From assembly GCA_047495785.1 (NCBI GenBank), contig JBLDXI010000034.1, forward strand, positions 372,001 to 436,000: 64,000 nucleotides of DNA. Reading direction: 5' to 3'. Position numbers and translations under genes: made by a program. Shown here piece after piece: positions 3,569 through 29,814 of this stretch (position 1 is the first letter of the stretch; every line of letters begins with the position of its first letter). This DNA is from Lepidodermella squamata (taxonomy: Eukaryota; Animalia; Gastrotricha). The notes beneath the pieces were generated by a model. It had not been told where the DNA came from, ran no database searches, and was given only the letters and a program-made list of their open reading frames with translations.

Positions 3569-6265
3569 ATGAACGAAAAATTGGTTAAACGTCTACGACC
3601 GGACGAGCCTGGGTCTCCCGCTAATTGGGCTGCTGCATTTTTGCGGCCCAGATCTGCAGTAATTTCGTATTTTTCTATGAAAAATTAATGGAAATTTTAC
3701 TAATTTTCAGCCTCCTCACAATGTTCGAAATGTCACCGGATATGATGAATTTCCTGAAGATGTTGTTCCACCTGAAAATAACGAAGGTCGTCGCCAGCCT
3801 GTGTTGCCTCCAAATGGCAACCACGAGCTTTACTATATACAAAATAATTGCTCATTAAAATCCATCTGTGAAAAGATAAAAACCGGTAATTTTAGAAAAA
3901 AAAAATGCAAGTTTTGCGTTTCAGAAAAAACGATGCTTTCAAAAATGTCTTACAAACAAGCTCGAAATTCTTATTTTATTTATTTATTTATTTAAAGAGC
4001 CATAACGCCCAGAAGAGGACAGCTCAGACAAGTGATCAATAGAAAAGTAAAGACAACAACAAAATTGAAAATCGAAATAGCATAAATAGTAGACTGATCG
4101 GGATCACTGTCGAAATCAATGCAATGATCAACATGACATGAACAATATGAAAATATATGAATATTCAACAATCAGAGCATAGCGGCATTAATGTTGTAGT
4201 AGTGTAGATAAGCCGCTTGGCGACACGCCTTCGCTGACTCCGCTTCGTGAACGCTCGAAGGCATTTGATTCCACAAGTGCGGGCCACGGTACGACATGCT
4301 TAGTTGGCCTCGCTCGGATGTGTAGGTCGGTTTAAACATGGGTTCGAAATTACGGCAGCTGTAGCCGTGGCTGCGATCGTTCAGCTTAAACATCAACGTG
4401 AATTCATCCGGCGCCATCTTGTTCAGGCTCTTCCACATGAATGTACATAGGTGCATCGCATGTTTCTGGCCGACTGTTAGCCACCCAAGTCGATGCCGCA
4501 GCGGGGCCGGATCCGCCAATGGATGAGCGCCGTATATGATTTTGATAGCTCGATCCTGCGACGATTGCAGTTTGTCGCGAGTCGATTTTGAGGCCTGTCC
4601 AAGGGTGAGGTCGCCATAATTCAAATGGCTGACGACGAGGCCATTTGTCATCATAACAGCAGTTTTGCGATCGATTCCAGCGTTGACAGCTTATTTGAGA
4701 GCAAACAGGCCTTTTCGGGCTTTGCCTTTGGCCATCTCGACGTGCTCATCGAATTGTAGCTTGTTGTCAATTTTGAAACCAAGGGTATCCATGATTTCTG
4801 ACGGCTTTATCGCAACTCCTCCGATTGTGACCTTGAAATCGGGCGCTGTCGAGAGGTGTGGTTTGAGAAGCATGAATTGCGATTTTTTCCCATTTACTGC
4901 GAGGCTGTTCTGTTTTAGCCATGCGCATACCCTGTCAAGTTCCAGTTGCAGAACTGAGTGGAGTTCGTTGATGTTCTTCGATCCGTAAAAAATTGTAATG
5001 TCGTCGGCGTATTGTGCTATACCGCATCTCCTTAAAATCAAAGGCAGGTCGTTTACATAAATTGTAAACATGAGTGGCCCAAGGACCGATCCTTGTGGCA
5101 CACCGCAATCAATTGACTCGAACGGGGATGCTTCGCCGTTGATTTTCGTGGTTTGGCGGCGATTGCTCAAGTAGTTTATCAATAGGCGAATTGACTCTTC
5201 CGTTACACCAGCGGATCGGAGAGATTCGATAATCCCATCGTGGTGGAGCGTGTCGAAGGCTTTGGATAAGTCGATCGACACGGCTCCAACCACGTTTCCT
5301 TTGTCAAGTAGATGTCGCCAGCGTTCGGTGAACGATGCCACGCAGGTGTCAGTCGAATGGTATTGACGGAATCCGTGTTGTGCCGGTGTTAAGAATTTGA
5401 TCGCTCGCAAATGATCTTTCAGCTGTGTTGCCAGGCAACGCTCGAACGTACGTGCTAGCGGTGAAGTGATCGAAATCGGCCTAAAATTCCCAACCTCAGC
5501 CTTTGATCCGGACTTATGCAGCGGTGTGACAATAGCCGTTTTCCAATCACTGATGAAGACACCATCTCGAATGGCCAAGTTGAAGAGCGCTGTGAGATGA
5601 CGAGCAATTGAAGGCTTTGCCATCTTCACGATGCACTCGGGAATGCCGTCGAACCCGGTCGTAGCCTTGTAACTCAGTTTGTCGATCGCTTTTTCGACAT
5701 CGGTGACCAAGACAGGTCGAAACGTAAACGGCGTTGAGCTTCGTTTACGTCTTGCGAAGTTCAGACAATCTCCGAGACTTTCGGCCACGATTTTTCCTGC
5801 TCGTGAGAAGAACAGATTAAAATTGGTGGCCTTTTGCAATGACTCATCTCTTGATAGCTGCGTCCAGACGTTGCGGTTCTTTGGCTTGGGGCGGAAATCT
5901 TTGACGATTCGCCACAATTTTCGCGGGTCGTTGCCAGCCTCCTTAACTCGTCGACGATATCGAGCACGGCGCGCCTTGCGTCGTTGTCGTTGACGTTGTC
6001 GCCGCGTGAGCGTTGGATCAAAATGCTTCATCTTGGCTTGGCGATTACGCTTTTTAGCTTGTTCTTTGTCGATCAACTTCGTCCATCACTGCTAGAAGCC
6101 GGAGTTTGATTTGAGACCAGAAAGTTTCGCAATCGTCCGACTCGTTCTGCTAACAAAACAAAATTTTATTGTAAAACCTGTCCCGGAAATCCACCAATTT
6201 GCCAGTCTTGTTATGACAAGCATTCTCATGGCCTAACCGCATTTAACCCGGGAAATTCGAAGTAG
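3569..6265 (+). pseudogene. Small spliced gene ending in a Cys/His zinc-binding domain resembling the piggyBac C-terminal CRD; LINE in intron 2; in-frame TGA at 6107
   Basis: Exons 3569-3658, 3711-3885 and 6096-6265 are phase-compatible. Motif NCSLKSIC...TKFYCKTCPGNPPICQSCYDKH. Confidence 0.45.
3971..6085 (-). mobile_element. 5'-truncated non-LTR retrotransposon (CR1/L2-like LINE), RT and C-terminal region
   Basis: RT motifs NFRPISIT, QHGFR, IDLSKAFDT, GVPQGSVLGP and QYADD. ORFs 4691..6076 and 4172..4654 are in the same frame, split by one TAA. (TAAA)n 3' tail at 3971-3995. Confidence 0.92.
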
Positions 6266-9231
6266 CAATAATCTGGCTTATTGATCTATATTTTTGTAGA
6301 AATTATTACATTTTGAATTTAAAATGACTTTCGAAGATCCTACTCAGCACTCTAAAAGCCCAAAGCGTGGTAGACCTGCTACCCGTGCAAAGGTACAAAT
6401 TTACAGATTTTTTCCTGATTTTTATTAAGATATAAAATATTCTTTCCAGACCGACTACACTGGCCATGTTCCATCGTCAACGCGGAGAAATTCTCTTGAT
6501 GTACGCTATTTATTTGCTGAGATAGCTTAAAAGGGAGCAACTTTCATTTATCCTAGGCCTCCACGACGTCGCAAGCTGAATCAGGGTGTCTAGTATTTAA
6601 ACCGCCTAGACAGGTAATTGTTTCCCTCGTCAGCACAGCCAATTAAATCATTTTAATCTTGTAGAAGGATGAAGAATATGTGGAACTCTCGGAACCTGGG
6701 AAACACAAACGGCGACATCGGCTTTTCGATGACCTCGAGAAACTGGTCGACTGGGAGCGTGACCACGGCGGGGTTCCAGTAGTAGGGGCGACGTTCGAAA
6801 TTCACGTGGCTGACGGCTCAAAAATAAAGCAGTTCTCGAAGTCCTCGGGAATTGTCCCCGATGACACTAGAAAAAAAATTAGGTTCATTAGCTGAAGATA
6901 ATCATCTTTTATGGCTATTTATCCTGAGGTTTATTAGCGGATATTTATCTCATGGTTTTTTAGCTACGTCAAATGAATCAGCCTGTAATTAGGACAAATT
7001 GCCACGGAAAATCGAGAAATTTCGGATAAAAAGCCGTCGATTTCATTGTTGATAAAATTCGCCCGCCACGCAACAGCAGTCATGACCCTTTCTGATTACG
7101 ACTTGAAAGTATTTCATTCGACTTTTTCACACGCACAAACACAGCAGCGATTTTTCGTAGTTTTTCAGAGTTAAAACCGCGGGAAGAACAACCGCGTCGA
7201 TTTCCGAACCAATTAGTCGAAATTTGAGGGCTGTCAGGTGAGAACTTCTATCTATTTACCTGTTGATTGATATTTTGATGGCTTCACCTGATGCGTTTTA
7301 TTTAATTCCTGAATTAATTTTTTTTACATTGGAATAAATTTTAATTAGAAAATCAGCTAATTATCTCCGGCCAACACGGACTTTTCTAACACCGGTAACT
7401 TATAATTAAACTAACATACTAACCTAACCAAAGCTCGTGTTATTCGGAGGTTGAATATGCTGATGATCTACGGTATTCACTATGGATTTTTCAAGAGTAA
7501 AATTTGATTAAAATTTGAACAATTCGAGCTCTAATGATCTCTGTTCGGGTTCTAAATTTTATATATTTTCAGTTGAATTTGCGGCATGTTCAGCTTCGCT
7601 GCTGTTGATAGTTGCGAAAATCTGAAAAACCGTAAGTTTCTCAGTTTTATCACAAAATTAGCTGTATTTTTTGACAAAAATTACAGCAAAATCGAAGCAC
7701 ATTGGCCGGTTTTCGATCAAGCTAGAAAGCATCGACTACACGGCAAACACGACCATGCTCAATTTCAAACTGAAGCGAATGACCCGCCTCTGCTCTCTGG
7801 TTCAGATCGACTCACTTGGCTGGCTGTGAAACAAAGAGCCGAGTTGTCAGATTTGTACGGCGAATTGAGGTGAATTTCCGTATGAATTATTTATTTAAAA
7901 ATAATTTTCAATTTCGATTTTAATCTTGAATATTTTCCTATTGCGGTAAATTTTACATTTCGAGGTTTTCAAATTGTTATTCAATTAATTCAGACTTGGA
8001 CTTTGATCGAATTTCGCGATTTTTTTCTCTAAACCATTGTCTGGTAAAAGATTCCCTGGCATAGTATGTTGATTTTCCGGTGCGATAATTAGAAATTTAA
8101 ATTGGGAATTCCTTTTGATTATTGCGTTTAAGTGTTTTTGCGTTTTGAAAAAAATGAATAAAGCGTGAAATATGATATCGCAGGTCCAGTCAACCGTGAC
8201 GATTTTTAAAATTTATCCTAATCGCTCGGAAATTCGACATGTTTCTCTTTCGAACGGAAAATAAATTATGTCCGTCGAACCACTTCGAATTCGCTAAATA
8301 AATTACACATTTTCTTCATTTCATGGGGAAAAAATTCGTTCTAAATAGGAGCCATTTTTATTCGAAATTTATAGGCAAATTTAGAAAATTAAATTTTTTT
8401 CGGTAGTAATATATATTAAATGAGCTCTTTCAAATTCAAAATAATTTATTAATTTTTTCCGAATTTCCTGTCTGATTTTTATTGATAGTATGGTATTTTT
8501 CAGATGGCAGATGGAAGGCTTGTGGACTGAGTCATGGCGAATCTAATGCGGCTAGCTAAAACCTAACCAATCTGCGTTGGAAATCGCACAGCTGGGCGAA
8601 CACAATCGATGCGTTTTTCGATCTCGTCGATTTCTCTTCGAAAATCTCCGCGGGAAATTGACATTAACATAAAATTAATTGATAAACTGTGTTTGATATC
8701 GTCGGCGCCGTGCAGTAATGTTGCTTAACCATGCTATACCCACATGGGAAAACAAATTTTCTTAATTTGTCGAATTTAGCCTCGAAACCGGTATCAAAAT
8801 GACCGTCTTGATGCGAGGATGAAGAATATGTAAAAATTGATGCACTTGGATCATCTGGGGTTAAGCTACAGCTATTTAAACGATTTTCAGTCGGCGTTAT
8901 ACTATTATTATTATTAGTGTGTGCATATATTATGCAAATGCGGCCTCTTGTGCGGGCGCATATTTTTAACCTATTATTTATTGCAAGAGAAATAGGAGCC
9001 ACTAGGCTAAATGTTTTCTCGATCAACAATAAATAGGTAGCTTTGATGTAGATAATTAGGGATCAAAGATCGGATCGTTTTGCATATAAATCCGCTTCGC
9101 TATGCTCTAAAGGGCTGCCGGTCACTCTGAAAAGCGCGAAATCTAATAATTATTGCTGGTTGCCATAAAGAGACGCCGTCACATTCGCCCTAGTAAAGTT
9201 TCATTGATATTGCTGCACTGTTACTGTTCAA

Positions 9232-9599
9232 CATAGACAAATAATTCTGGTATCAATAGAAAGCTCTCATAAAATTCTGCATCGATCCCATTAGTAACAT
9301 TTTGGAATCTGAGGTGGGGCAAATTGCAAGTTCTCAAAGTTTTTAAAGCCGTGAATTTTGGGAAAATTTTTACGACACAGCTTCAAAATGTATATGGTTG
9401 TATAGAGCGTGAGCTACTGCCTTTTTGACTACGGCTCCACTACGGCCGATGAAAACTGTCGTTGCAACACCAGGATATAGTGAGGGCTAAAATTCAAAAA
9501 TTTCCTTAAAAATGTGCTTGAGGACTTCTATTTGAAAATTCGAATAATTTCGGCAGTATTACAAAGGCAAGAGTGTCCAGTCTCTTATATTTGTCTATG
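9232..9599. mobile_element. hAT-like MITE
   Basis: Termini CATAGACAAATA and TATTTGTCTATG; perfect 8-bp TSD CTGTTCAA. Confidence 0.85.
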
Positions 9600-10876
9600 C
9601 TGTTCAAATATAAAGAGATGCTGCTGAAAAAGATTAAAAAACCATTATCAACACGACTAAACACGACGTTCGCTCAACAAAGTTTTACTTCAAAATTATT
9701 ATTATTATTATTATTATTATTTGCCGATTTGCCAATAATAGATTCAATATAGTCAATAAGAATAGTCGACAGCAAAAGCAGCAGGCTAGGCACAATTTTG
9801 AAACAGAAACATAGTTCAACTTTGGACAACGATCTTTGTTCGCGTTGATTGGAGGCAAGCCGTAAAATCCCTGATCCAGTGCCCATTTCGTAGAACATCG
9901 GACTCTGACATTCGACATTAAGACAGATACAAAAGCGAAACCATCTTGGGCCACGATGGGTTTTCGTTCAGTCTAAAAGAAAAGACAACAAGGTTTTAGA
10001 TTCACCATATTTGTTACAACAACAGCCCAACCGATAATATATTAGCCCAAGTCTAAATCCCGCCCGCATCAATCGCCCGGGCCATGCAATGGATAGGCTT
10101 CACGTATGGGATAGCGATAGCTGTCACATTCAGCATGCTACGCAAGCAGTTTGCCGCGAACTTGGATTTGACTCGGCTGTTGATTGCTGAGTTTCAATTT
10201 TCTTAATAAATGTGGCTCGACTATGTTTGCAATAAAAATTCGGGATGGATAGGAATAAAAAATTTAGAGGATTCTAATCATTTGCGCAGGACAAAACGAG
10301 TGACTGGTGATTTCATAGATGGGAGTAATTTTGATATTATTTCTCGATTTTGATATTATTTTGTTGTCACTGATTATCAGATGGTTTTTCTCCAACTCGG
10401 ATCGGTCTCCTAAACTGATCCTCCGATTTTTTTCTGGGCGCCCATAAAACGCCCATTTCAACGCTAAAAATACTACCCAGTCTTCTTTAATCCAATCATT
10501 GATATACGCAGCATTAAAACATGCAAACCCTTTCTATATAGGTAAATTCCCGATCCAAGGTCTATGAAATTATTCCGAGCTCTATCCAAGTTTTACATGT
10601 TGAAAGCGGCAAGCGGCAAACACAAAGTGCGTACCGCATTTGTTTTATTTTACAGTAGAGAGCAGCCCGGGCTTCTAAAATTTCAACCTTGAAATTTTGA
10701 AGAATTCGAAGAATCAAGTTTTTGCGAATGGTTAATTTTTGACGTTTTTGAACTGAGTTGACCCCTCAGCCCTGGGGTATTACTGGAACAAATCCGATGT
10801 CTTTTCTCGGTTAGCATAACGCATTCGAGGGTGTAAAACCACTAATACTAACGCGATTGGCCATCGCCATCTCTAG

Positions 10877-11040
10877 CACTAGAAAAAAATATGGTCCGAA
10901 ATCAGGGGATGCTTCATCCGAATTTAGGGGTAGGCCCTGAAATCAGGGGGTTGCAAAGTGCTGTTTTTCAGAGTTATGAATTCATACCATACTAATTGAG
11001 CATCTCCCGAATTCAGCGGTATGCTATTAGGGGATGAATA
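10877..11040. mobile_element. Orphan left end of a second CACTA-type element
   Basis: CACTAGAAAAAAAT followed by repeated CCGAA(A/T)T(C/T)AGGGG-like subterminal motifs. No matching right end seen. Confidence 0.5.
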
Positions 11041-11099
11041 ATTGAATTAAAAACTCTAGAATTTTAGTCATATTTCATGTGTGCATATGCTAAGCAGTG

Positions 11100-13013
11100 C
11101 GTTCACGTCGCGGAAGAACCCGCACTTTAGGCAAAAAAACTCCTGTACTCCCAAGTACAGTATTTTTAGGCTGTAATCCTAGTTACAGTCTCCAATGCTG
11201 TACGAACGGTACAGTCCACTCGAGCTGTACAGCGAGTACAGTTCATCTTACTGTACTGCGATTACAGCTCAATTAGGCTGTACTGCAAGTACAGTTCGTT
11301 TAGCTGTACTAGTAATTACAGCTATTATTGACTGTAGCGTGAGATACAGTCCAAATAACTGTACTAGTTGTACAGCCCGACGAGCCGTACCCTCAGTACA
11401 GTCAAATGACCATATAATATAGAGCTACAGCAAAAACGACGTCTATGTTACTTCTTCGATCTCGGAGCGAAACCAAGCATCAAAGGTGACTATCTACCTT
11501 GGTCAGAAGGTGTATGGTTTCGCTGCGAGAATGAGCAGCGAAGACAGTCTGTGCGCGAGATGCGAGACGGCTATGAAGCCAAATGGCCTTGGAAGATATA
11601 TTCCCTTTCACCCGCTGCGTTCAAGAAGGTTCCCTCTGGAGCTCCACCCAGCTTGAGAAATTCGCCCATTCCTCTATCCGACACTTTTGGATGCTTTGAT
11701 GGCCGATCTTCTGGAAATGCTGTAAAGTGAAAAAATTCCTAAAATTACTACCCAAAATTACCTAAAATTACCTAAAACAAGTATTAAGCCCCCCGTATCA
11801 ACCGTTTGGAGTGGCACGCAGTCTGATCATCGCGCAATTTTTGACACTTCAGGTCTGAAGAAGAACAATTCCGTTAGCTATGATTCGGATTTTGATGATT
11901 AAAAAGAAAGTTAGGAATGAAAAATACTTTTTATAATTGAATTTTAATAATAATTCCGGTTCCGGTTTTGAAGAGGGCGAAGGCTGGCAAAGAGTATTCC
12001 TTGCCCAACCCACAGTTCAAGATCCTGCTTTTTCAGAAAAATTCGTAGTTTTCAATAGAGTTAACAATCATGCGCCATTCATCTTTTCAAACGAAACCAT
12101 TTTAGGTAGTGTAAGATCAGGAATAATTTCTATTTCAAACTCCTTTACGCCAGATGTTTTGTTTTTAGGCGTTTTGCCCGTCTTATTGTTCGCTTTACTC
12201 TTAAATTTATCCGGCGTAATTCCTTAGTCAGTACTACCTTAACTAATTTCTATGCACTCCGTGGATCCATCTAGTTCTGGGTCGTCCTCTTAGTGCAAAC
12301 CATCCACACGGAGGCGTCCAAATATTATAAATTTTGTTAATTAGTCCTTCCACGTCATAGTCGCGTGATCTAGTAATGTGCGCGAAATACCTTAACCGTT
12401 GTTTTTCTACAATGCGGCCCACTACAATGAGACCTCCGCATAGAGCTAGCCTTATGTCTATGTTAGAAATGTAGTCCATAAGGTGGACATCTAATATCGA
12501 ACGGAGCCAGCGATATTCAATATTTTTTAGTCTATTTTCTCGAGCTATCAAGAATCAAGCTATCAATTTTGAAAAGGGCGAAACTCCTTAACGATCGGAG
12601 AGGCATTTAAAACAGATCATTCAGCTGTCAGAAAATTTAATTAGCTCGTATCGACTAGTTCTGCGCCTTAGGTATTTTCTATATATGCCGCAAGCCGAAA
12701 ATTTGCATCCTGGGTATTTTCGATCTTTGTCTCCGCAATCGACTACAGTTCGATCGACACTGTACGCAAAAGTACAGTTATGAGCTGTACTAGGGGCTAC
12801 AGCCAATCTGAGATGTACATTGTACTACAGTCACTGAACTGTACAGTGCTTTACAGCCGATCTGAGCTGTACTATGCAGTACATACGACGCACTGTACAC
12901 GACTGTACAGTTTCAACCAGCTGTACAACTATTTACAGCTGCGAGAACTGTACTTTGCAATACAGTAAAATAAAAAAAATCACCTAAGTGCGGGTTCTTC
13001 CGCGACGTGAACG
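11100..13013. mobile_element. Non-autonomous TIR element with TACAG/CTGTA subterminal repeat arrays
   Basis: About 31-bp TIR CGTTCACGTCGCGGAAGAACCCGCACTT(T)AGG; 4-bp TSD AGTG; dense CTGTAC/GTACAG repeats at 11140-11430 and 12740-12970. Confidence 0.85.
12170..12551 (-). mobile_element. Degenerate RTE-clade LINE fragment (C-terminal region of the RT ORF)
   Basis: RWLRSIL...ISNIDIR...RLRYFAHITR...RGRPRTRW is typical of RTE C-termini; stop codons follow downstream. Confidence 0.75.
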
Positions 13014-13285
13014 AGTGAGTCCGAGTCTTATTCATAAACGAAGGTCGACTCGTTGGAAAATTGGCATAGATTCAAAGGCCTTTGTGTAAGTAACTCGGTA
13101 AGAGTTAACTGGCTGCCGGGTAGTCCTGGGTGGAGAATCTCTGATCCTAGTTACTCTAACAGGGTTTCGGAACCTTGCTACCTTGCTGCCTGGTACAACC
13201 AGGTACTTGGATTTCAAGATATAAATTTTTTAAAAGTGCTTTATCGTTTATTATTGACATGTAAATTTTTCAAAAATTGCATTAA

Positions 13286-13830
13286 TTAATTGCAAGGTCC
13301 CAATTCCCACCTATGAAAAAAAAAATTTGAGCGCCCGAATTCGCACCATTCGTTAGTTTTACCGTAAAAGCACTTGCGGTAGTTACTAGAAAATCCGTAA
13401 ATCTGCGACTCAGTTCTCCGATAGGCGTAGATACCCAGCAGCAGCAAAGACACGATTACGAGCATCAGGTAAATTCGAAAAATGATCAGAAACATAAGCG
13501 ATGGAAAGCCAATGCAGAGGGCTGCTAAACAACCACATGTGGTGGCTCTGACACTGAGACGTAATGCAAAAAGGATCACTAGGCTTGCTAGAAGCATCGC
13601 TAACTTGAACTTCAAAAACTCGAGCAGGAAGTGAACAATGTCAGCAATGATTTCGAAAAAACCCTGAAACAAAAGGCTAACTGCGTCCGGTTCAGTGTGA
13701 TGCAAAATACTGCCATCGACGAGTTTAGGCAACCCATCGTGGAACAACACGTCGTACATGACCCCGTGATAATGGGTGTAACATAAAAGTAAAGCAACAG
13801 AAATGAAGTTGCAAACCGTAACGATCCCAT
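13286..13830 (-). CDS. Possible small multi-pass membrane protein or relic, carried inside the Sola-like element
   Basis: 157-aa ORF with 2-3 hydrophobic stretches. An upstream signal-like segment (MGSLRFATSFLLLYFYV) lies in another frame. Confidence 0.3.
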
Positions 13831-14662
13831 ACTAGTGATAGCTGCAAATAATACTGACAATAAGAATAAACAATATAAACTCCAAATCTGACCAGATACA
13901 ACAAAAGACTTTGTCGAGTTCACATTGATTCTTTTATTCGGCTTACACATCGTTAATTACTAGCTCTTGATAACAGCAAGGTGTACATTGAGTTAACATG
14001 TAGCAGCCGCTGCTCGGTTCCAGGCTCCAATCAGTAGCCGATCAGTAATGTTTGATAACTTGATGACAGTTGCATACCGCGCTACCTACGAGTCCACCCT
14101 CATCAGTAGCTGACTCAGTAGTGTTTAATTCCTTGATGACAGTTTCATGGCGTTTTGATGTACACCTCACTCCTGTGAAGAATAAAGGTCCATTTGGTTA
14201 TGATAACGGTAGGTAGATAATAATAACTTGCCTTCTCTGCTCGTTATTTTATTTGTTATTTTATCATGACAGCTAAACCTGAAAAAGTGTACTGGGCCGC
14301 GAAACCTCACGTTTGATAAAAAGATGGATTTGCTGTCTTGGATTGCGGATGGTGTTATTCCACCGCGAATGCTTGATTACTTCAAGGCTCTACCATGTGA
14401 CATTTCTTCAGAGGAGAAACGCCGGGCATATGAAAATCGGCTAGCCCTGATTCGAGAAAAATATAAAGACAACGAATGGACAGCCGATGACGTGGATATG
14501 GCAGACGAAGAAGAGCTTATCGACAGGCTTTGAATTTTGGTATTGGTGTTATCCTCGTAATATATATAATATATAGTTTTACCTCTTGTTTTAATGTTTT
14601 CAATGATATTATTATTATTATTATTGTGCAGAAATTGAAATAAATTTTTTGTAGTGTTTTAA

Positions 14663-15167
14663 CACTTTAACTGCCAAAAATTGACTGCGAGGTCCGATAT
14701 TTGGGTCTAATTCCTGGGTCTCTCAAAAAGTCTTTTATTTCGGGTCAACGATGCGTCGAGGGGCAAAATGCCTGACGGCAAAGTGTAGGCCATGACCTGG
14801 CGGTTCTTTTGACACCGAATTCGGGGCCACAAGGTCTGAGCAGGTCATTGAAAATGACAGTGAAATAACGTCGAAAATTTTGGATTAGAGCCAAAAATCA
14901 GACCCAAGAATTGGACCTAATTATTAGACCCAGATTATGGCGCAACAATCGAAATTTCACTGTTTTTCAAGTTTGATTTCTGTGCGTTCCTTGAAGTCTT
15001 TGGCCCCGAATTCGGTGTCAAAAGAACCGCCAGGTCATGGCCTACACTTTGCCGTCAGGCATTTTGCCCCTCGACGCATCGTTGACCCGAAATAAAAGAC
15101 TTTTTGACAGACCCAGGAATTAGACCCAAATATCGGACCTCGCAGTCTATTTTTGGCAGTTAAAGTG
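14663..15167. mobile_element. piggyBac-like foldback MITE
   Basis: About 167-bp TIRs starting CACTTTAACTGCC; TTAA on both flanks. Confidence 0.9.
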
Positions 15168-15719
15168 TTAATGAAAAAATGCGTTGTTGGTGTTGTGTCT
15201 TTGAGCGGCTTCTGGTCAACGATAATGAACGGTGAAGAAAATCTTAGATAGCAGGCACTTGAGAACAACATTTTTAGGGGAATTTTATTATTCTTCTCGT
15301 ATTTTACGTCAAGTCTCAATAAATTTGTAGTTATCGGAGCTACCTGTTACGCACAATGCAACGTAAAATAACAACGAATTTCCATAAAAGTTATGTCGCC
15401 TGGCCGCCCATGCTTTAATCGCGCATCATGCACAACAACATACATATGCGCACACTAATAATAATAATAGTACGCCGACTGAAAAACCGCTCAAACAGCT
15501 TCAACGTGGCACTGGACGCTCGAAGTGCATCAATTTTTACATATTCTTCATCCTCGCATCAAGACGGTCATTTTGACACCGGTTTCGAGGCTAAATTCGA
15601 CAAATTAAGAAAATTTGTTTTCCCATGTGGGTATAGCATGGTTAAGCAACATTACTGCACGGCGCCGACGATATTGTGAACTTGTATCTACCTGATCTAC
15701 CTGATGTTTGATTTGTGAA

Positions 15720-17320
15720 TTTTTTCGCGAATATTTTTTAATAAAGTAATAATTATGGCTGTATCTTTTTCCGTACAACGTATATCTCTTTCCGTACAAC
15801 GCTAAAGTCTTTGATACGTACAACATGATTAAACCGGGTGGAATATCTCCCAATCGTACAACGTATTATCTTTTTGCGTACAACATATAATTGCCGCCAC
15901 GTGGTCGAATGTTGGGTCATATAACACGTGGCCGATTGAACCAGCATGGCCGGTCAAAGGGGCCTTCCCAGTTGCTCTCATTCGATAAGTTTTCGTTATG
16001 GCGAAATTCAAATTAACAGTGGTTTTCTTAGCCGTGTTGATGCTAACTGGGGCTCACCTCATAGCCCCCGCGAACTTCATAGGCATTAGCGCAGAGCTGG
16101 ATAATGCATCAGTTTCTTCCTTTACCGATGATGGTGACGATGACGTGGCTGAGGACGATGATTTCGATAATGCTGGCGAGGAGAACGGTGAAGTCGACGA
16201 CGAGGCTGATTTACCGGCTGATGATGAAGATGCTCCTGGCGAGGGTGATGACATTTTCGATACCTACATGCCGATTACGCGATGCACGCTGAAGGTTGTG
16301 CGTACAACAGGACTCGGTTCTCATGAAAACGAAAGTGCGTACGAACATCTGTTTCGATCATTGAAGAAGTGGAAGCCGGACTATTGCCCCAAAGCAGTCA
16401 TGGCTGACGGCGCTTCGTACATAACAGCCGCGATCATCGCTGTTCGAAATCACGCGAGACTGGACATTCCACTTTGAAGAGTGGGCGACTTCTCCGAAAA
16501 CTACCGCCAAAGAATACACCACTGCTTATTCTTACTACCTCAAGTTTGCTGATCATTACGACCAAATCGGTGACAATGAGTGGCTGTGGCTTCCTTGTGA
16601 TTATACTGTCGACGATTCAGTTATTACTGCTCGAAGAGATGGCAACTTCTCAAGCCTTAATGCGTTCGACTGCGCCTTGAAGTACGTCTTCTTGTTGGTA
16701 GTCGCCCCTGGGATCATCACTTGCACTTGTGAAACTGGCGTCAAACGAAAGCCATGCGCTCATGCCATCGCTCTCGCTCATCACTTGCCCGGCCACAAGC
16801 GAATCGACGCGAAATACCACTCTGTTCCGTTGGTCATGCGTGGCAAGGCTGGGAGACGAAGCAAGGTAGCTCCAGCTTTGGTCCATCAAGCTTCGCCGAC
16901 TCGACCCAACCTGGAGTTTTGGCAGGAACCTGCTGGAGCAGTCGAGGCTGATTCGACCACAAATCCGCCTATTCCAACTGAGCAGCCCAAGAAAAAGCGT
17001 GGTCGGCCCAGGGGTAGCCGTAACAAGCGATCTGCTTCTGCCGCTGGGCGTGGTGAGGTTCGCCGCCGGCGAGGACGCCGCCAATCTGCCAAATAGCTGT
17101 TGTATGGTTGGGAGATATGGAGAGTGAAATAAAATATGAATAAAAATAATATTGCGTTGTACGGTTGGGAGATGTTAAATTTAAATTTAAATTTAATAGA
17201 TGTGTTGTACGTTTGGAAGATATTTCTGTTGTACGGAAAGAGATATACGTTGTACGGAAAAAGATTTCCTCATAATTATTATCGAGGAATCTACTTTTTC
17301 GAATTACGCTGAAAAAATAG
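15720..17320 (+). mobile_element. Deleted Mutator-like (MULE) element with transposase relic
   Basis: ENESAYEHLFRSL...PKAVMADGASYITAA (MULE DDE segment); SWIM finger CTCETGVKRKPCAH; AT-hook KKRGRPRGS. Inverted CGTACAAC/GTTGTACG subterminal repeats at 15760-15885 and 17096-17265. Confidence 0.8.
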
Positions 17321-17488
17321 AAAAAGGGAAGAGGAGGGAGGAAGGGCCTGCTGGGTCCGAAAATTCAATCGATTGTTGCGTCATGGGTCACAGATGGTGA
17401 TAACTATAATGCTGCTCGCTTCGTGGACGAAGGCTAATAAACCAAAGCCAGCTAATAAACCGCCAGCTAAATACCCAAAATAGATAAT

Positions 17489-18521
17489 AGCCCCTTTTAC
17501 ACTACACCATACGAATGGTAAATGATGGTAATTACTCCATTGTTAGATAACAGAAATTTGCTCGCTTTTATTTGATTCTAACGTTTTTATCGGTGCTATG
17601 AGAGAACTAAAAGGAATTAAAAACTTTTTGATTTTATTGTAACTAATTTTCAAAGGTATAATAGCATGCTCATTTTCCCGTGAAACTGGATACGATTACT
17701 GGCTTTATATTCAGCACCCGAAAAAATTCCCGCATTTGAATAATCGAACAAATTTTTTTATAAAATTATTCTGGTAAAAATATTCTGTAAATTTCTTGCT
17801 TCATCACCGTGATCTCGAGGATTTTCGCGTCAAAAATTGTCAGCAAGTCAACTATTGAATACATTTCAAAGTGTTTATTTCCGTAAAATTTGCCGTAAAA
17901 TTCTCAACAGGGGGTCTTACTTTTAGTCTGGTAAACGATTTCATAACATTTAATTTTTGAAATTCACGATTAATTTCAAAGAAATATTGGTTGCAAAATT
18001 CCATGTGGTTTTCAGTAAAAGGCATCGCTTCACAATACCCCGGGCGATTTTAAGCGGTCAAATTAATAATTTTACAGCAATTTTGTGTGGAAAAGCTGTC
18101 CACAAATACCATGAAAATTAAAACTAAAAAATACCCCAAAATTAGCATCACCTCAATTTCCCAACGCGAGAGCCGAGTTCAAAAGGTGATGAAACATGAT
18201 AGAAAAAATGCAGAGATACGCTTAGTAGAATCGCAGAAAATTTGCGGAATTTTCAAGATAATTTATTTATGGCGATTTTATTTCAGCCAGGCACTGAATA
18301 AAGCTCAGGCATCCTATCCGGTTGACGGAAAATTGATCAGGTCGTAAATGACTCGCAAAAATACCCACGTAAACTGGTTTCAATTCTATTTAGTTCTCTT
18401 AAAATCACGATAAAACCGTAAAAATAAGCAAAAACAAGCTAATCCTTGTTATTCAACACACGAGTAATTACCATCAATTACCATCATTTACCATTCGCAT
18501 AGTAGTAGTGTAAAAGGGGCT
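17489..18521. mobile_element. PIF/Harbinger-like MITE, copy 1
   Basis: TIR AGCCCCTTTTACAC...GTGTAAAAGGGGCT; AAT on both flanks. Confidence 0.85.
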
Positions 18522-18524
18522 AAT

Positions 18525-19765
18525 AGCCCCTTTTACACCACACCATTCGAATGGTAAATGATGGTAATTACTCCATTGTTAAATAACAGTGATCAGCTTG
18601 ATTTCATTTTATTTTAACGTTTTTTATCGCTGCTATGAGAGAACTAAATAGGAATAAAAACATTCTGATTTTTTTGTGACTAATTTCAAAAGGTATTACA
18701 GCATGCCCATTTACCCGTGAAACTGTATATGATTCCTGGGCTTTATATCAGCACCCAAACAACAATTTCTCGCCTTTGCATAATTAAACACATCGAACAA
18801 TAGCCGCCAAGTATTTTTAAATTGTTTTTGCGAAATTATTTTGGTAAAATTATTTGTATAACCCTTGCTTCGTCGAGGAATTTCGCGTCAGAAAATTGTC
18901 ACTTTTGAATATTTCTCAAGATGTTTATTGCAGTAAAATTTGCCTTAAAAATCTCAAGAGAGTCATACGTTTAGTCGCCTGTTGCGGAGCCAGCAAATTT
19001 ATGGTAAACGTATTCATACAAATTACTTTTTTAAAAATTCACGATTAATTTCCAATAAAATATAAATTCCAATAAAATTCCAATAAATTCCAATAAAAAT
19101 TGGTCGCAAAATTCCACGTGGTTTTCAGTAAAAGACATGACCATCGCTTTAAGAAAAGACGTGATAATAATTATCGATAACAATAATTTAAAACAATTTT
19201 ATTCTAGGCCTCGGTGTTGTTTTAAGGCATGTTTTCGCCTTCGATAATTCGAAGTTAGGAATTATTTCTTGAAAAGAATTGGTGAACCCCGGCGATTTTT
19301 AATCGGTCAATAAATAATTTTACAGCAATTTTGTGTGGAAGCTGTCCAGAAATACCATGAAAAATAACTAAAAAAATACCCCAAAATTGGCATCTCGACA
19401 TATTCCCAACGCGAGAAGCCAAGTTCAAGGTGATGCAATTTGGTAGAAAAAAATTCAGATACACGCTTTGCGGAATCACGGAAAATTTGCGGAATTTTGA
19501 CGATAATTTTTTTAATGGCGATTAAATTGGCCAGGCACTGAATAAAGCTCAGGCATCCTATCCAGTTGACGGAAAATTGATCAGGTTGTAAATGACTCGC
19601 AAAAATACCTACATCCGCTGGTTTTCATTCATTTTAGTTCTCTAAAAATCACGATAAAAGCGTGAAAATGAGCAAAAACAAGCTAATCCTTGTTATTCAA
19701 CACACGAGTAATTACCATCAATTACCATCATTTACCATTCGCATAGTAGTAGTGTAAAAGGGGCT
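18525..19765. mobile_element. PIF/Harbinger-like MITE, copy 2 (head-to-tail with copy 1)
   Basis: Same TIRs and colinear body as copy 1; AAT between the copies and after copy 2. Confidence 0.85.
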
Positions 19766-22263
19766 AATAAACCCGTCGCCAGCGGGGTTATTATCCCAGC
19801 CTAAATTTTAGCTATTTATCTAGCTAATAAACCTAATTTTTTTTCTAGTGCGAGGCATCAAGCTGGGAGCGTGCGGAATTGTAATATTTTGCTTAACGAC
19901 GGATATGTGGAAATTTACGTTGTATCGTCAGGTTAGTCGATATGAAAAAAGGTGGCAATATTTCCTTGCGACGCTTTGAACGTATGCTCCGGAAGATAAA
20001 AAACAAAATGAAAAATGCTTTACCTTTGTTTTTTGTCGATCCACATAAGGTACAATTTTATTTTTGGAATTGTAAATGTTTCCACCGATTTTCTTCTAGG
20101 GGGAAGAGGACAAAGATGAAAATGTGCGAGTTAGGGGCTGCTGTTTTCGTGACCTTGTGGATGTTCTCCATGTTATTGTTGCATGCTACAACCTTGGGAC
20201 GAAATCTGTGCATGAGCTTCGTCTGTCTTTGGACGGAACCCCTCCCCGTAGCCAGGGCCAGCCCATTGAGCGTTTTGACGTAGCCCTGATGTCTACTAAA
20301 ACTGCACCTAATTTAGTGGGCGAAATCTGTCTTGGCATGTATTTGGATGAAGAACTACCAGAAAAAATCAATTACTACTTTGGCCACCTTTTCGACAAGG
20401 TAAATTTAATGACTTATGAACACCTACCCAGATGGAAATTCAAGATGAGAATATTGGGCTAGATTTCAGCTGATTTATTTAGTGCCCTCAAATAGGCGAA
20501 ACACATAATCGGCCACAATTTCAGCTAAAATAATCTCTGAAATCATTAACTAGCTAAACAGACAGGCGACTCAATTAAATCGAATTAATTCGACGAACAG
20601 TCAACTGCTAATTTTTAACACAAATGGCTTCGGCATCGCGAATCTCTTGCAGCCAAATAATTTTTCCCAATTTTAACTAAACTCGATTTCGCAGAAACTT
20701 TCTTCTAAAATGATGGCTGAGCTTCCTGAAAATCAGTTTGGTGAAATAGCCCCAACATTGCGCATAATTATAGGTGAATTTCTTCACCTAAAAAGTTGGC
20801 CTGAACGTCGTTTTTGGTCTCGCAAATTTCCGTCTGAGTAACTGATTATTCGCATTGTCAATGGATTTTTATCCATTTCCAATTTCGATTTTTCATTATT
20901 TCCATCTGTCATTTTTCAGATAAATGCCATCGAAAAAGAGGGTGTGGTCATAAATGGCGATTTATATCGTTTTTCATTTTTTTGGGACTCTGATGTCTAC
21001 GCTTGCATACGAGTATTTGGTGCTAGCCATCCAACGGCTGAGTAAGTCTATTTCTATACTTTGTCCAAATTTTCCTTAAGTGTTAGTCGTTGGGAACGTC
21101 AAGGCATGGAAATCAGCCCTTTTTTCTGTAAATTTGAGAAAAAATCCACTTTCAATTCGGAAGCGTCAGTTTAACCCAATTCCTGACGCAGTATTTCTTC
21201 CAAATTTAAACTCTACGCGCCTGTCACGCGCCACTGCATATGTATTTGCCATGATGAGCTTTCCCAACTTCACTCGACTTTGAAACGATTTTTCTCTTAT
21301 ATTTTTCAGAGAAATATGTCCAATTTGTTTCAAGACGGCATACGATCCGGAGCCTGGATGCAAGGAGCTGCGTCCTTATCACGACGAAAACGCCATCAAA
21401 GCCCTCGTTGACTCCGATGACGACAAGGGTCACTCTCGCCCTTCACTGCTCAACATTTCAGCCAAGAAAATTCTGCCCGATACGTTGCATTTTTACGACC
21501 GGTTTAGCGAAACAGTGATCAGTACGGTAAGATATTATTGACTCCCTCAAATCTTTCGGCTACTTTTTGGCATGACTTAGGTATTGACCGTTGTTGCCGA
21601 ATGCGGCTTCGTCAGTGAAGCAGAACTGTTTGCCCGGCTTTTCGCCGAAGCATCCTGTAAGGGACATTCGACCTACGAGAGGGTACATATTAAGGTGGAA
21701 ATCAAGAGTGCGACAAAGGCTGGGGGTAATCGCCTAGTAAAGATAACCATCGACACCGACAGCCAAAAAGATGTGGCTCGTAGCTTGATGCAGTCGAGTT
21801 TCGAAATTTTAGGCGACGAAATCAACGAAATTAACCGAACAAATCTGCTACGGCATTACTTCGCTTCGTGGTCACCTTCGATGCTGAGCCGTATGCTCGA
21901 AGCACCTCAGCAAGCTCAGCAAGCTCAGCAGTCTACAAAGCGCAAAGCGACATCATCGCGAGCCGCCTTGTCCAAGCCAGCCCCACAAGTCCTCGATAAA
22001 ACGGCTCTTCTCAACACAATTATGGCCAGAGACGAAGCTAACGAAAATTATAGCGAAAAGCCGGAAATCGATAACTGTATAACTCGTCTGCAAAATGCCG
22101 ATTCCCTACTCAAATCAAGCCGTATTGTGATGGGCCTGTTCAAACAGAAGACGCTGCCTTCAGAACACGACCTTATGAATCTGGAAAGACTGGTTTTCAC
22201 CCTTAGGGGCCGAAATACCACGTATAGCCACTGTAAGTTCCGTCATTTACACAATTTCCTTTA

Positions 22264-22329
22264 CCTTTTCACGAGAGCCTTTTCACGGGAGCCTATGCTT
22301 GGCTGAATCAAAATTCCGCTGTGAAAGGG
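22264..22329. mobile_element. Tiny piggyBac-like relic in a transposase intron
   Basis: TTTA|CCTTTTCAC...GTGAAAGGG|TTAA. Confidence 0.4.
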
Positions 22330-24891
22330 TTAACATACATTTAGATTGTATTTTTAACGGGTTTGCATTTTTTTGGAGACGAAACAACTTATTTTCTCTT
22401 GGTAATGAATATCTAAATTAGTTCCTACGTTGTAACTGGGACGAACAGTCTCCAATTTCTCAAGGTTTCAGCTAATCGATTTTGAATTTTTAATGTACAA
22501 TAATGCACTGTACAATAATTTTGGCGTTTTATCTTTATTCCCTTCGTTTTTAACGGAAATATGTTTTTTCATAATTTTTATAAAAAGTATTTATAAAAAC
22601 TTTGAAAAATTCCACTTTTTATAAATATTTTTATAAATCTTTGAAAATTAATTTGAAATTTATAAAAATTAAAATTTATTTGAAATTTATTTAAATTTTA
22701 AAAAAAATGTAAAAAAGAGCATACACCATTACGTCCAATAACTCGCACTTCTCCTGGCGTACCTGTATTTTTAAACTTTATCTATTGTTTACCAGTTACA
22801 ATTTTGAACACCAGACCATACATTTTCAAACACCAGTAATTTTAAACACCAAATCGATCCTTAAAAAACACGCTGTTATTTCAGATGTTGGTTCGCATTT
22901 CTACCCTCACCTGAGCGAAGGCCGAGATCTGTTTGCTCTATGTACTAGCCCAATGGAGCGATCACATCGCGTGACAAAAGATTTCCGGCAACATTGTACA
23001 TCACCATTTAACGGTACTCTCGTCGCTAAGCAGCTGATGGAAGGTGAAAATCAAATTCTCGACAATTTTGTGCGATCATTTAACAAAGAAATACATTATG
23101 AATTCGATGACGAAGATCAGTACAAAGCCGGCGAGTTTCCGCGACCTATAATTCGGCCCCGCCTCCACCACTGATTTCAGCGTCTTAGGGACTCTCATTA
23201 AAAATTTCTTATTTGTTTTTGAATATGAGTCCTAAGATCGGTTGAGCTTTGACCGATGAGTGCACAGCTTACTGGCTTTCGATATCGATATAGTCTACAG
23301 AACACTCGGTAATTAATCAGATTTTCTACCTCTTTTTCGAGAAATTTCCTGAATTAATCCAATTGCCTTGATCCTCGATGTCATTTAAAATTTCAAAATT
23401 TCAAAGCATTAACTTTTAAATCTTTTAAATTTTTAAATTTCAAAAATTATTTTTTAAATCTTAAATATAAATTTTTTAAATTACTCGCGTTTCCAATTTT
23501 ATTCAATTTCTGATTATATTTCAGCTCTCGTTCCTGCATGCTATCGAACCAACGCCAAGCTATGACAGATTGAGGTGGGTGCGATCAAAAACCTAGCAAT
23601 AATTTCCAGCCAGTGCTGAATTTCGTTACGGCCGTCATGTCGATATACCCAAGATTTTCCAATTCTTCTATTATTTGTGATCGTAATATCTTCAATTTCT
23701 TGAATAAGCTTGAATCGCATCGAATTCGCCTTCTGCGGAATTTTTTGGCCACCCTACTGTTGGGATCACGCGTAAATTCTACAAAACTTTTGAATAGCTG
23801 CTCACACTGACTGTAATACGTCTCTGCTTATGGGCGGGCAAAAATACGCACTTTGTAGCCACCTTGTACATGTCTGAATTCAATGCGACACGCTCTAGTG
23901 AATTCGAATTCTGCTCAGTAATCAATTTCTGCGTGATTCATTAGCATGTTGTAGTTTTATTACTATCAATTTCTGCGTGATTCATTACAAATGCCATCTT
24001 TTTTCGAACTGAATGCGACGTTATTATCTCTTTGTTTAAATTACTGATGAAATGTTTGGAATTTTGCCTGAAATTAAAAAAAAACAATTCAGCGATAACC
24101 TGTGGGTAGGTGATGTTCACATTTACGTTATATTCACGCGTGAGTGGTTTAATCATGTATGACTTTTTACGCGCTCTTCGTTCCAGTTTAATACGGCCGT
24201 GTCACCTTTTCCTACTCCTACAAATATCTCCTTCTGCAGAAAATAATGCAGAATTTCTTTGAAGTTGTGAAATGCGCTACTAATTAACCGTTATCTTATT
24301 CTCATTCCCCAAAGTTCGAATCTCTCAGATATTTGCGAAAATAATGCCTCGAGATTCCCAACCATGGCTATAATTTTTCTCGCCTTGGAAAAAATTTAAT
24401 AAAATACCTATGGAAAATTCCTATACCTATCCACTTATTTCCGACTCAACAAATTTTCGAAATGTTTGTTACATTTTTCAAAGAGTTGTTTCAAATTATA
24501 AATTCTTGTTTCTATTGTGTTATTCTTTATTCTTATCTCGCCGGCCGTAAAAATTGTCTATCACTATCAATTGTTTTCAATCTGCTTTCTTTTCGCCAAA
24601 AGTTTCCTCGATTATTTTCATTTATGTAAGTTCGTACTGGAAAACTGGTACGAAATTGCGGGTACGAAGTTACACTTTACCAAATATTGCGGCTTATAAT
24701 TAAATCAGATATTTCTAATGCCTATTTATTGCTTTTTCCCGCTTCTTTTCTCCAAGTGTTGAGACCCAATTATGACGTCACTATGCTCGATGTTGAGGTA
24801 ACTTTCACTTCGGAAATCTTGTTATCAGCTGCCGAATGATTCAAAGCTTACTGAATATTAACATATATCGTGGGAAGTATGCGGTTTCAAA

Positions 24892-25070
24892 CAGCGGCGT
24901 AACTAGGTCTACCAAACTGGTGGGGCCAGCCTTGGGGCCAGCACATCTTTTGTACGTATTTGCGGCCCCGAATTTTTCAGACCAAAGGGTCCCCCCTGTG
25001 GTACCCTGAGGGTATTTTTCCAGCTGGTGGGGCCGGTGCCCCCCCTGGCCCCCCCTTAGTTACGCCCCTG
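24892..25070. mobile_element. hAT-like MITE (179 bp)
   Basis: TIR CAG(C/G)GGCGTAACTA(G/A)G; perfect 8-bp TSD GTTTCAAA. Confidence 0.92.
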
Positions 25071-25555
25071 GTTTCAAATAATCCTGTCTGCAAACATGTT
25101 TCAATATGTTACTTCAATCTTCAATTGCCTTCTTATTTTCACCGCGATGGCCGCGATGGCCGGCCGAAATAAAATAAAAATGCGGATTAATCAGTGGCGT
25201 AATTTTTTTCGAACTGTGACCTATTAAGGTTACCGTATCCGGATGCAGCAGGTACTAACAGGCTCCAAATCACCTTAAAACACCTTGAAATTGGATAATT
25301 AGCCGAGAATCGCGGAGAATCGCGGAGAAAACTTCCATTCTTACAATACAGCCATATGACGTTCTGATGACTCAATGATGATTCATCGTTAATCCAAAGG
25401 AAAAACCGGCTGCGCTATGTAAGTTTTTCGACTCTCCTTTGGTCAGATCCTTTGATTATTGAAATTCATTAAAAACCGGTGTTTATTACCGGTATAAATC
25501 GGTTTAAACTGGTGGGCGGTTTTTTCAGAATATAAACCGGTCGGTATAATACCCT

Positions 25556-25820
25556 GTCGCTCTACAACCGTCGTCAATTCATTCACATAAACGGTGAACA
25601 TTAGCGGTCCGAGAACGGACCCATCAACTGGTTTTGTTGATGGGTTTAAATATTTTACAGTCAAAAGATCCGCACGTTGGAATTGAGGCGATGCTAGTTG
25701 CAATTTTTCGCACGTGGGAAATGAGGCTGTTTATCCCTTGCAAAACGGACCAAAATGACGCCTTCTTCACGATCTCCGAAAATAGCTCCAAGGAAAGGGA
25801 GATAGTTACAACAATATGAA
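25556..25820 (-). mobile_element. Degenerate LINE RT fragment
   Basis: GSVLGPLMFTVYVNEL motif, abutting a CAGGGTATTA hAT-like end at about 25555. Confidence 0.6.
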
Positions 25821-29558: not shown

Positions 29559-29814
29559 ATTCAATCCGAAGCTAAAAATAAAGGAAGGGAAGTAAAATTT
29601 GCCCTTGGGAATTAGGAAAGAGGAGAAAGCCTCATTACAAAAGGAACCTATTTCTTCAAAGCTACGGTGATAAGAAATCGGAGATACCGGTGGCTCGTCA
29701 TATCATATCTGCCAGAAACACGCTGAAACGCGCATTAATACTTGTACTCTAATCTCTGGACGAGGTTTGCCGGTAATATAGAGACCTCTTGGTATCTTTA
29801 TGTTTACGACCTTA

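Follow-up and report, generated by a model that had tools for sequence, protein, structure and literature searches.

This 64,000-nt window of forward-strand DNA from the gastrotrich Lepidodermella squamata raises the question of whether transposase-type motifs spread over some 17 kb belong to one gene and, if so, whether that gene descends from the RAG1/Transib lineage, as the original prediction proposed. An intron-rich predicted gene carrying such motifs is present at 6324–23174 (Table 1), and it is read here, with a probability of about 0.78, as a divergent, apparently single-copy transposase gene of the CMCT clade that is interrupted in this copy. The ten exon pieces first proposed are all present on the + strand, with canonical GT-AG splice signals. 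Splicing of the five 3′ exons (20100–23174) yields 526 codons with zero stops, an open run expected by chance with a probability of ∼1e-12 at the stop-codon frequency of the window (0.051). The exons have a GC content of 47–52% vs 30–33% for the introns, short introns of 51–57 nt are found alike in the 5′ and 3′ halves of the gene, and the four short 5′ exons (6324–6864) are of the same style as the 3′ exons. The sole sequencing run found (X1) is of DNA, and the predicted splice junctions rest on sequence signals.

Table 1. Predicted exons, motif codons and the inserted transposon, in window coordinates (slashes mark splice junctions; residue numbers refer to the 678-aa model).
Feature	Position	Strand	Details
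Exon 1	6324..6392	+	ATG, 23 codons; AT-hook KRGRP at 6363-6377; donor AAG/gtacaa, phase 0
Exon 2	6450..6500	+	17 codons; acceptor ttctttccag/; donor GAT/gtacgc
Exon 3	6557..6613	+	19 codons; acceptor atcctag/; donor CAG/gtaatt
Exon 4, left part	6665..6864	+	acceptor tcttgtag/; open, without donor, up to the transposon end
Transposon insertion, 12,986 bp	6865..19850	.	termini CACTAG...CTAGTG; flanks TGA and CGA
Left terminal inverted repeat (TIR), 29 nt	6865..6893	+	TIR alignment and pattern search
Right terminal inverted repeat	19822..19850	-	28/29 identical to left TIR; unitig break at 19850
Interrupted exon, right part	19851..19931	+	donor CAG/gttagt at 19931; frame uncertain by one base
Exon b	20100..20399	+	putative first catalytic Asp D197 (LSLDGT, codon 20232-20234); canonical splice sites
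Exon with putative second catalytic Asp	20920..21041	+	D277 (WDSDVY, codon 20992-20994); canonical splice sites
Exon d	21310..21526	+	C296-x2-C299 (ICPIC, codons 21317-21319 and 21326-21328); H353 (PDTLH, codon 21488-21490); canonical splice sites
Exon e	21581..22232	+	217 aa, H353-H582 region; Q/A-rich low-complexity stretch; TTYSH at end
Junction of exons e and f	22232/22885	+	spanned by TTYSH/YVGSH; His codons 22229-22231 and 22896-22898
Exon f, last	22885..23174	+	H587; putative catalytic E607 (SPMERSH, codon 22956-22958); C-terminal tail; stop codon 23172-23174

The motifs quoted in the original prediction, including the N-terminal AT-hook, were all found in the order given there and on the + strand. 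Along the 678-aa model they run as AT-hook, D197, D277, C296-x2-C299, H353, H582-x4-H587 and E607, with a spacing of 80 between the two Asp residues (D1-D2) and of 330 between the second Asp and the Glu (D2-E). In the predicted protein, the AT-hook would serve DNA binding, an RNase H-like core would hold D197 and D277, and a zinc site would comprise C296/C299 together with H582/H587, the long insertion between H353 and H582 being probably helical. The third catalytic residue would be E607, located 20 residues past the second zinc His. By analogy with the clade, the enzyme would be expected to bind and nick the ends of transposons and to perform strand transfer by means of two metal ions.

The CMCT clade comprises CACTA, Mirage, Chapaev, Transib, Plavaka, ESTA, RAG1, and Lanisha, and the pattern D-D-C(2)C-H(3-4)H-E is a signature of the clade as a whole and not of RAG1/Transib alone (Kojima, 2025; PMC12730594). 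Every residue of this signature is found in the model, which shares with the clade the order D, D, E, a C(2)C soon after the second D, a His in a D-x-L-H context, an H(3-4)H before the E and a long insertion separating the second D from the E. The gene differs from clade members in its single-copy look, in the nine introns of the model and in that sequence searches link it to no member of the named lineages. It also differs in its ends, since the 5′-CA..TG-3′ termini and 2–5 bp target site duplications (TSDs) typical of the clade were not found around 19851–23400 or 6077–25500; the inverted repeats flanking these intervals were chance-level 8–13-mers only. The original prediction had likewise seen no TIRs at the gene, and CAC-starting TIRs with a 5-bp TSD were not found around it either. 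The missing element ends fit a relic or a domesticated gene.

Database searches retrieved a single homologue, the fragment P0001, which was the only match among 1.84 billion representative proteins when the 112-aa ORF holding exon b was used as a HMMER query. P0001 is 37–39% identical to exon b, keeps LDGTP and aligns as far as the donor, and the reading frame of P0001, too, starts close to the start of exon b. The fragment comes from another public run. Nothing new came from word-index searches in which exons e and f and alignment A1 served as queries, leaving exon e without a homologue, and scans of metagenome and viral contigs gave no match. No transposase family in Pfam was matched by the exact exon pieces, and PDB sequence and profile searches with exons b, d, e, f and A1 returned chance matches only (e.g., plectin, TFIID), so that these queries, which were exon-sized and hence of limited sensitivity, gave no significant hit to a transposase family at the level of either profile or structure. 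A DUF1280 match (E=0.037) lay below the cut-off, leaned on intron read-through and disappeared with the exact exon; an FTP match on exon 4, also below the cut-off, was disregarded. AF2 models of exon e (pLDDT 42.8) and of exon b with P0001 (pLDDT 46.9) both stayed at a pLDDT <50 and were unusable. In the language-model (Atlas) neighbourhood of exon b, clusters of Transposase_21, Plavaka, and DUF1280 predominate and RAG1_RNase_H fragments form a minority, four Pfam families that all belong to the CMCT clade, and among the otherwise unnamed neighbours of exon f the only named cluster was a weak DUF4218; by the tool's own criteria these scores (0.84–0.92, <170 shared features) are leads only.

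Read depth in the DNA run is ∼41 over 19854–22650 vs 135–1800 in the flanking repeats, and no second copy was found within the window. The gene looks single-copy in this genome.

The interruption in exon 4 bears on whether the two halves form one gene. A pattern search of the window for the TIR gave exactly two matches, with zero expected by chance, and in the DNA run the repeat unitig stops at the right end of the transposon, with unique sequence beyond. The insertion contains nested repeats, a SWIM/MULE-like ORF, and LINE fragments. A second CACTAG-ended copy considered at 10877–14656 was rejected upon alignment. The interval that the original prediction proposed to remove corresponds exactly to this TIR-bounded element, which had not been recognised there as a transposon. 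The exon 4 ORF continues for 13 further codons inside the insertion before a stop; because the exon itself has neither stop nor donor ahead of the insertion point, it is most simply seen as severed by the insertion, with its remainder lying to the right of 19850. Removal of the interval had been expected to give a stop-free splice, an expectation that failed, as exact removal leads to a stop at 19881–19883, which is also encountered when a 3-bp TSD is removed along with the element. The 678-aa ORF is open only upon removal of 6865–19849 or 6865–19852, i.e., one base fewer or two more than the element itself. The description of this copy as recently inactivated is supported insofar as a transposon interrupts it. 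The two halves are joined in frame only with a 1-nt adjustment. With exon 4 split by the CACTAG-ended element in this allele, the full-length protein could be made only if splicing were to remove the insertion; otherwise, the in-frame ATG at 19905 may be the start of an N-truncated product of 535 aa.

It is possible, but not probable, that the exons at 6324–6864 and those at 19851–23174 are unrelated genes or fragments with a transposon between them, the transposase ORF being confined to the 3′ part and N-truncated. Exact excision, with a TSD of 0 or 3 bp, restores no single frame, and the upstream ORF runs into the stop noted above. Two of the three frames of 19851–19931 are open, so continuity across 6864/19851 comes cheaply and is weak evidence alone. 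The ATG at 19905 is in frame, and apart from the AT-hook neither a homologue nor a domain match was found for the 5′ exons. Against this stand the absence of a stop or donor in exon 4 ahead of the insertion and the equality of strand, intron size and GC contrast in the two halves. Furthermore, the 3′ part alone would leave ∼50–70 residues before the first Asp, probably too few for a DNA-binding N-terminus.

A single interrupted CMCT-clade gene remains the preferred reading, and its assignment to the Transib/RAG1 lineage, whether as a transposase of the Transib type or as a RAG1-like gene that has been domesticated, is considered unlikely. Mouse RAG1 has the same spacing at several local points, namely 19 residues from the second Asp to the first Cys, H(4)H, and 20 residues from the second His to the Glu, the mouse positions being D708-C727, H937/H942, and H942-E962. 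The AT-hook lies ∼180 residues ahead of the first Asp, comparable to the GGRPR of RAG1, which lies ∼210 residues ahead of D600. These features, H(4)H with a Glu 20 residues later, the Asp-Cys distance and an N-terminal AT-hook-like element, are shared with the RAG1 core and with Transib transposases (HzTransib, Nozomi), and the Atlas neighbours of exon b include RAG1_RNase_H fragment clusters. Low copy number and undetectable ends are also common for autonomous Transibs, which are typically single or low copy (PMC4411706), and divergent Transibs may be without InterPro matches and have TA or 3-bp TSDs (10.64898/2026.08.26.747230).

No exon, however, matches any RAG1 Pfam model or any PDB chain of RAG1, RAG1L or HzTransib, even at E<=10, so the profile similarity anticipated by the original prediction was absent from Pfam and PDB searches with exon-sized queries. 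The larger spacings differ as well: D1-D2 is 108 in both RAG1 and the Transib Nozomi (D232/D340; Nozomi preprint 10.64898/2026.08.26.747230) vs 80 here, and D2-E is 206–214 in Transib and 253 in RAG1 (PMC1131882; Nozomi preprint 10.64898/2026.08.26.747230) vs 330 here. The C(2)C and H(3-4)H elements are common to the whole CMCT clade, and RAG1 clusters are fewer than CMC and Plavaka clusters in the Atlas neighbourhood of exon b. The surroundings also lack a 5-bp TSD, a CACAATG-type, heptamer-like TIR and a RAG2-like partner. On the last point the original prediction is borne out, an ORF listing showing none of >=100 aa between 23175 and 27272, where the shorter ORFs look like repeat debris. 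No test run placed the gene in the RAG1/Transib branch, and it is not a canonical Transib. What stands of the proposed RAG1-superfamily transposase is a DDE-type gene whose residue arrangement, D, D, C(2)C, H, H(4)H, and E, is shared by RAG1, but without a match to RAG1 or Transib.

Long D2-E distances, such as that of the present model, are typical of CMC transposases. The gene resembles EnSpm/CACTA, Chapaev, and Plavaka in the Atlas neighbours of its exons, Transposase_21, DUF1280, and Plavaka for exon b and DUF4218 for exon f, of which DUF1280 corresponds to Chapaev (PMC3985635). It differs from EnSpm/CACTA in that the exact exons have no Pfam match to Transposase_21 (PF02992) or DUF4218, from Chapaev in having no Chapa or RING zinc finger, its N-terminal 190 residues being without a Cys-rich motif, and from Mirage in having no Pfam match to DUF1258 (PF06869). 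By description it is reminiscent of ESTA, CMCT transposases that resemble RAG1 to profile methods yet are not Transib; the ESTA of rust fungi are EnSpm-like, have a TA TSD and find RAG1 as the best HHpred match, although they are fungal whereas the gene described here is from an animal.

That the locus is not a transposase at all, the motifs being coincidental in an unrelated lineage-specific gene, would agree with the lack of any significant database match and with the one homologous fragment found, but is very improbable given seven conserved positions that follow the expected order, several at spacings typical of the clade, a predicted β strand that ends just ahead of D197 (AF2, low confidence) and the four independent CMCT Pfam families that neighbour exon b, which holds the first Asp, in the Atlas. 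Least credible is a host-retained RAG1-like recombinase of an undescribed CMCT lineage, combining RAG1-type zinc-site and Glu geometry with CMC-type spacing and acting now or formerly on the neighbouring variable ankyrin-repeat genes; as the original prediction had stated, no link to those genes was found, RSS-like signals are absent near them, and RSS-like heptamer-nonamer patterns do not exceed shuffled expectation anywhere in the window. In a weaker version, the gene would simply found a new CMCT lineage.

As it stands, the locus is read as a divergent, interrupted transposase gene. RAG1-related transposases bear on how V(D)J recombination arose and matter as tools of genome engineering, and the present case indicates that RAG1/Transib is called too readily when a RAG1-like motif pattern is the sole criterion. 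All predicted catalytic and zinc-binding residues are kept, yet the gene was unseen by Pfam and by a sequence search of 1.8 billion proteins, indicating that current profiles do not cover the full breadth of the CMCT clade. Were profile, structure and tree analyses of the whole protein to place the gene close to the split of Transib and Chapaev, the relation of those lineages would become easier to resolve.

The five 3′ exons of the predicted transposase gene (see table) join into an ORF of 526 codons, and at the stop-codon frequency of the window (0.051) a stop-free run of this length has a chance probability of ∼1e-12. GC content is 47-52% in exons vs 30-33% in introns, and four introns measure 51-57 nt. 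The gene is a genuine exon-intron structure rather than an accidental series of ORFs. The RAG1-type motifs quoted in the original prediction were all found on the + strand in the same order, in three-frame translation and in the raw sequence. A small repeat (22775-22901) lies in the last intron, with a depth of ∼252 in X1, and DNA from ∼23156 on, inside the final ORF codons, is repeated (depth 185-396).

Features of the gene, its predicted protein and its neighbours in the window
Feature	Position	Strand	Remarks
5′ exon 1	6324-6392	+	starts with ATG; canonical site
5′ exon 2	6450-6500	+	canonical sites
5′ exon 3	6557-6613	+	canonical sites
5′ exon 4, left part	6665-6864	+	canonical site; cut by insertion
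3′ exon b	20100-20399	+	canonical acceptor/donor
3′ exon	20920-21041	+	canonical acceptor/donor
3′ exon	21310-21526	+	canonical acceptor/donor
3′ exon	21581-22232	+	canonical acceptor/donor
Last 3′ exon	22885-23174	+	canonical splice site; TGA stop at 23172-23174
AT-hook	residues 14-18		678-aa model
First catalytic Asp (D1)	D197		678-aa model
Second catalytic Asp (D2)	D277		678-aa model
C(2)C	C296, C299		678-aa model
Conserved His (D-x-L-H)	H353		678-aa model
H(4)H	H582, H587		678-aa model
Catalytic Glu	E607		678-aa model
Ankyrin-repeat ORF	27544-28233	-	
Kinase fragment	28908-29564		between ankyrin ORFs
NmrA-like paralogue	31511-32107	-	between ankyrin ORFs
Ankyrin-repeat ORF	39115-40419	-	
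NmrA-like paralogue	51780-52523	+	between ankyrin ORFs
Ankyrin-repeat ORF	54385-58122	+	largest: 1,245 aa, one exon, >20 repeats

The interval 6865-19850 is exactly one transposon of 12,986 bp. It is bounded by inverted repeats of 29 nt, identical at 28/29 positions, that start with CACTAG and end with CTAGTG, a pattern found in the window only at these two sites (chance expectation 0), and the flanks are TGA and CGA. In X1, the DNA assembly of the one public run containing this DNA, a repeated unitig stops at 19850, where a single-copy unitig (depth 41) begins; the terminal 62 nt of the insertion have ∼3x single-copy depth. Exon 4 has neither a stop nor a donor ahead of the insertion and is therefore cut by it. 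Within the element lie an ORF of SWIM-finger/MULE-like type, LINE fragments and further repeats; its termini are CACTA-like, yet it carries no CMCT transposase of its own.

Several repeats lie within the insertion. A nested short MULE-like element (15747-17281) has 79-nt inverted arms (84%) around two ORFs, one acidic, MULE-like by eye and without a Pfam match (15998-16477), the other with a SWIM zinc finger (16677-17096; 22.4 bits). A ∼1.24 kb repeat with MITE-like inverted ends is present in two copies, tandem or nested, at 17485-19774; its depth in X1 (∼1,700-1,800 vs 41 for unique DNA) therefore indicates roughly at least 40 genomic copies. Inverted 192-nt arms (91%) at 8696-8887 and 15483-15674, 6.6 kb apart, have one ORF fragment in common, and in a near-perfect hairpin (14659-14829/15001-15171) arms of 171 nt (99%) enclose a loop that is also 171 nt long.

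The original prediction that the exons splice without stops once 6865-19850 is removed did not hold, as the upstream frame meets a stop at 19881-19883, which is also reached when 3 bp more are excised. The 678-aa ORF is open only with removal of 6865-19849 or 6865-19852, and continuity across 19851-19931 comes cheaply because two of the three frames are open there. The 5′ and 3′ halves probably belong together; translation from the in-frame ATG at 19905 could also yield an N-truncated product of 535 aa.

Homology tests were all run with exon-sized pieces of the spliced protein. Both AF2 structure predictions were unusable; that of exon b, at low confidence, places D197 directly after a beta strand followed by two more strands, an order like that of RNase H-like DDE enzymes. 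Language-model neighbours of exon b, at lead-level scores, were clusters with Transposase_21 (15), Plavaka (10), DUF1280 (8), which represents Chapaev (PMC3985635), and a few RAG1_RNase_H fragment clusters, all four being families of the CMCT clade (CACTA, Mirage, Chapaev, Transib, Plavaka, ESTA, plus RAG1); the sole named neighbour of the last exon was DUF4218. The paper that names this clade (PMC12730594) assigns it the signature D-D-C(2)C-H(3-4)H-E, with two Cys and three His counted in a figure legend, and the motif pattern of the original prediction is therefore that of the clade and not specific to RAG1/Transib. We regard the gene as a likely CMCT-clade member (probability ∼0.78), possibly of a new branch.

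Membership of Transib/RAG1 specifically is unlikely. Several spacings favour it: D2-Cys 19, H(4)H and His-Glu 20 equal those of mouse RAG1 (D708-C727, H937/H942, and H942-E962). The AT-hook lies ∼180 residues N-terminal to D1, comparable to the RAG1 GGRPR. Transibs are, moreover, frequently single-copy without findable ends (PMC4411706), and divergent members may lack InterPro matches, with TSDs that can be TA or 3 bp long (preprint 10.64898/2026.08.26.747230). However, no exon matched the RAG1 Pfam models or the PDB chains of RAG1, RAG1L, and HzTransib, even at E<=10. D1 and D2 are 80 residues apart, whereas the distance is 108 in RAG1 and in Transib Nozomi (D232/D340/E553; preprint 10.64898/2026.08.26.747230), and D2-E spans 330, where Transib has 206-214 and RAG1 253 (PMC1131882). 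Neither a heptamer-like TIR nor a 5-bp TSD was found around the gene, and the ORFs listed downstream of it include no RAG2-like neighbour, in agreement with the TIRs and RAG2-like gene originally reported missing.

A full HMMER pass over 1.84 billion representative proteins with the 112-aa ORF containing exon b gave one match, P0001, a 108-aa ORF 37-39% identical to the query, at positions 489-815 of L001, a 1.6-kb Logan contig (SRR21620664; 36% GC). The alignment spans exon b to its donor and LDGTP is retained. Other exons of the gene were not detectable on L001, searches with other exons and in other collections gave zero further homologues, and the 64-kb window holds no second copy.

Single-copy depth, many short introns and absent ends are compatible with a gene that has been domesticated or with an old relic, as is the exon boundary common to the distant homologue. 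The 1-nt frame problem and the splitting of exon 4 by the transposon agree with a gene that, in this allele, is dead or dispensable. If the nested repeats are later than the insertion, the disruption would be old, and the intact 526-codon 3′ ORF would then need explanation.

As the original prediction had noted, no link from the gene to the ankyrin genes (27.5, 39-40, and 54-58 kb) was found, and RSS-like or TIR-like signals are no more frequent than expected by chance. The largest ankyrin ORF has a GC content of 52-56% and a 1,102-aa antisense ORF of a kind typical for repeat arrays. A 461-aa ORF (4691-6076, -), LINE reverse transcriptase-like by eye, ends ∼250 bp upstream of the transposase gene (exon 1), and further RT-like fragments lie at 12243-12551 (-) and 25443-25703 (-).
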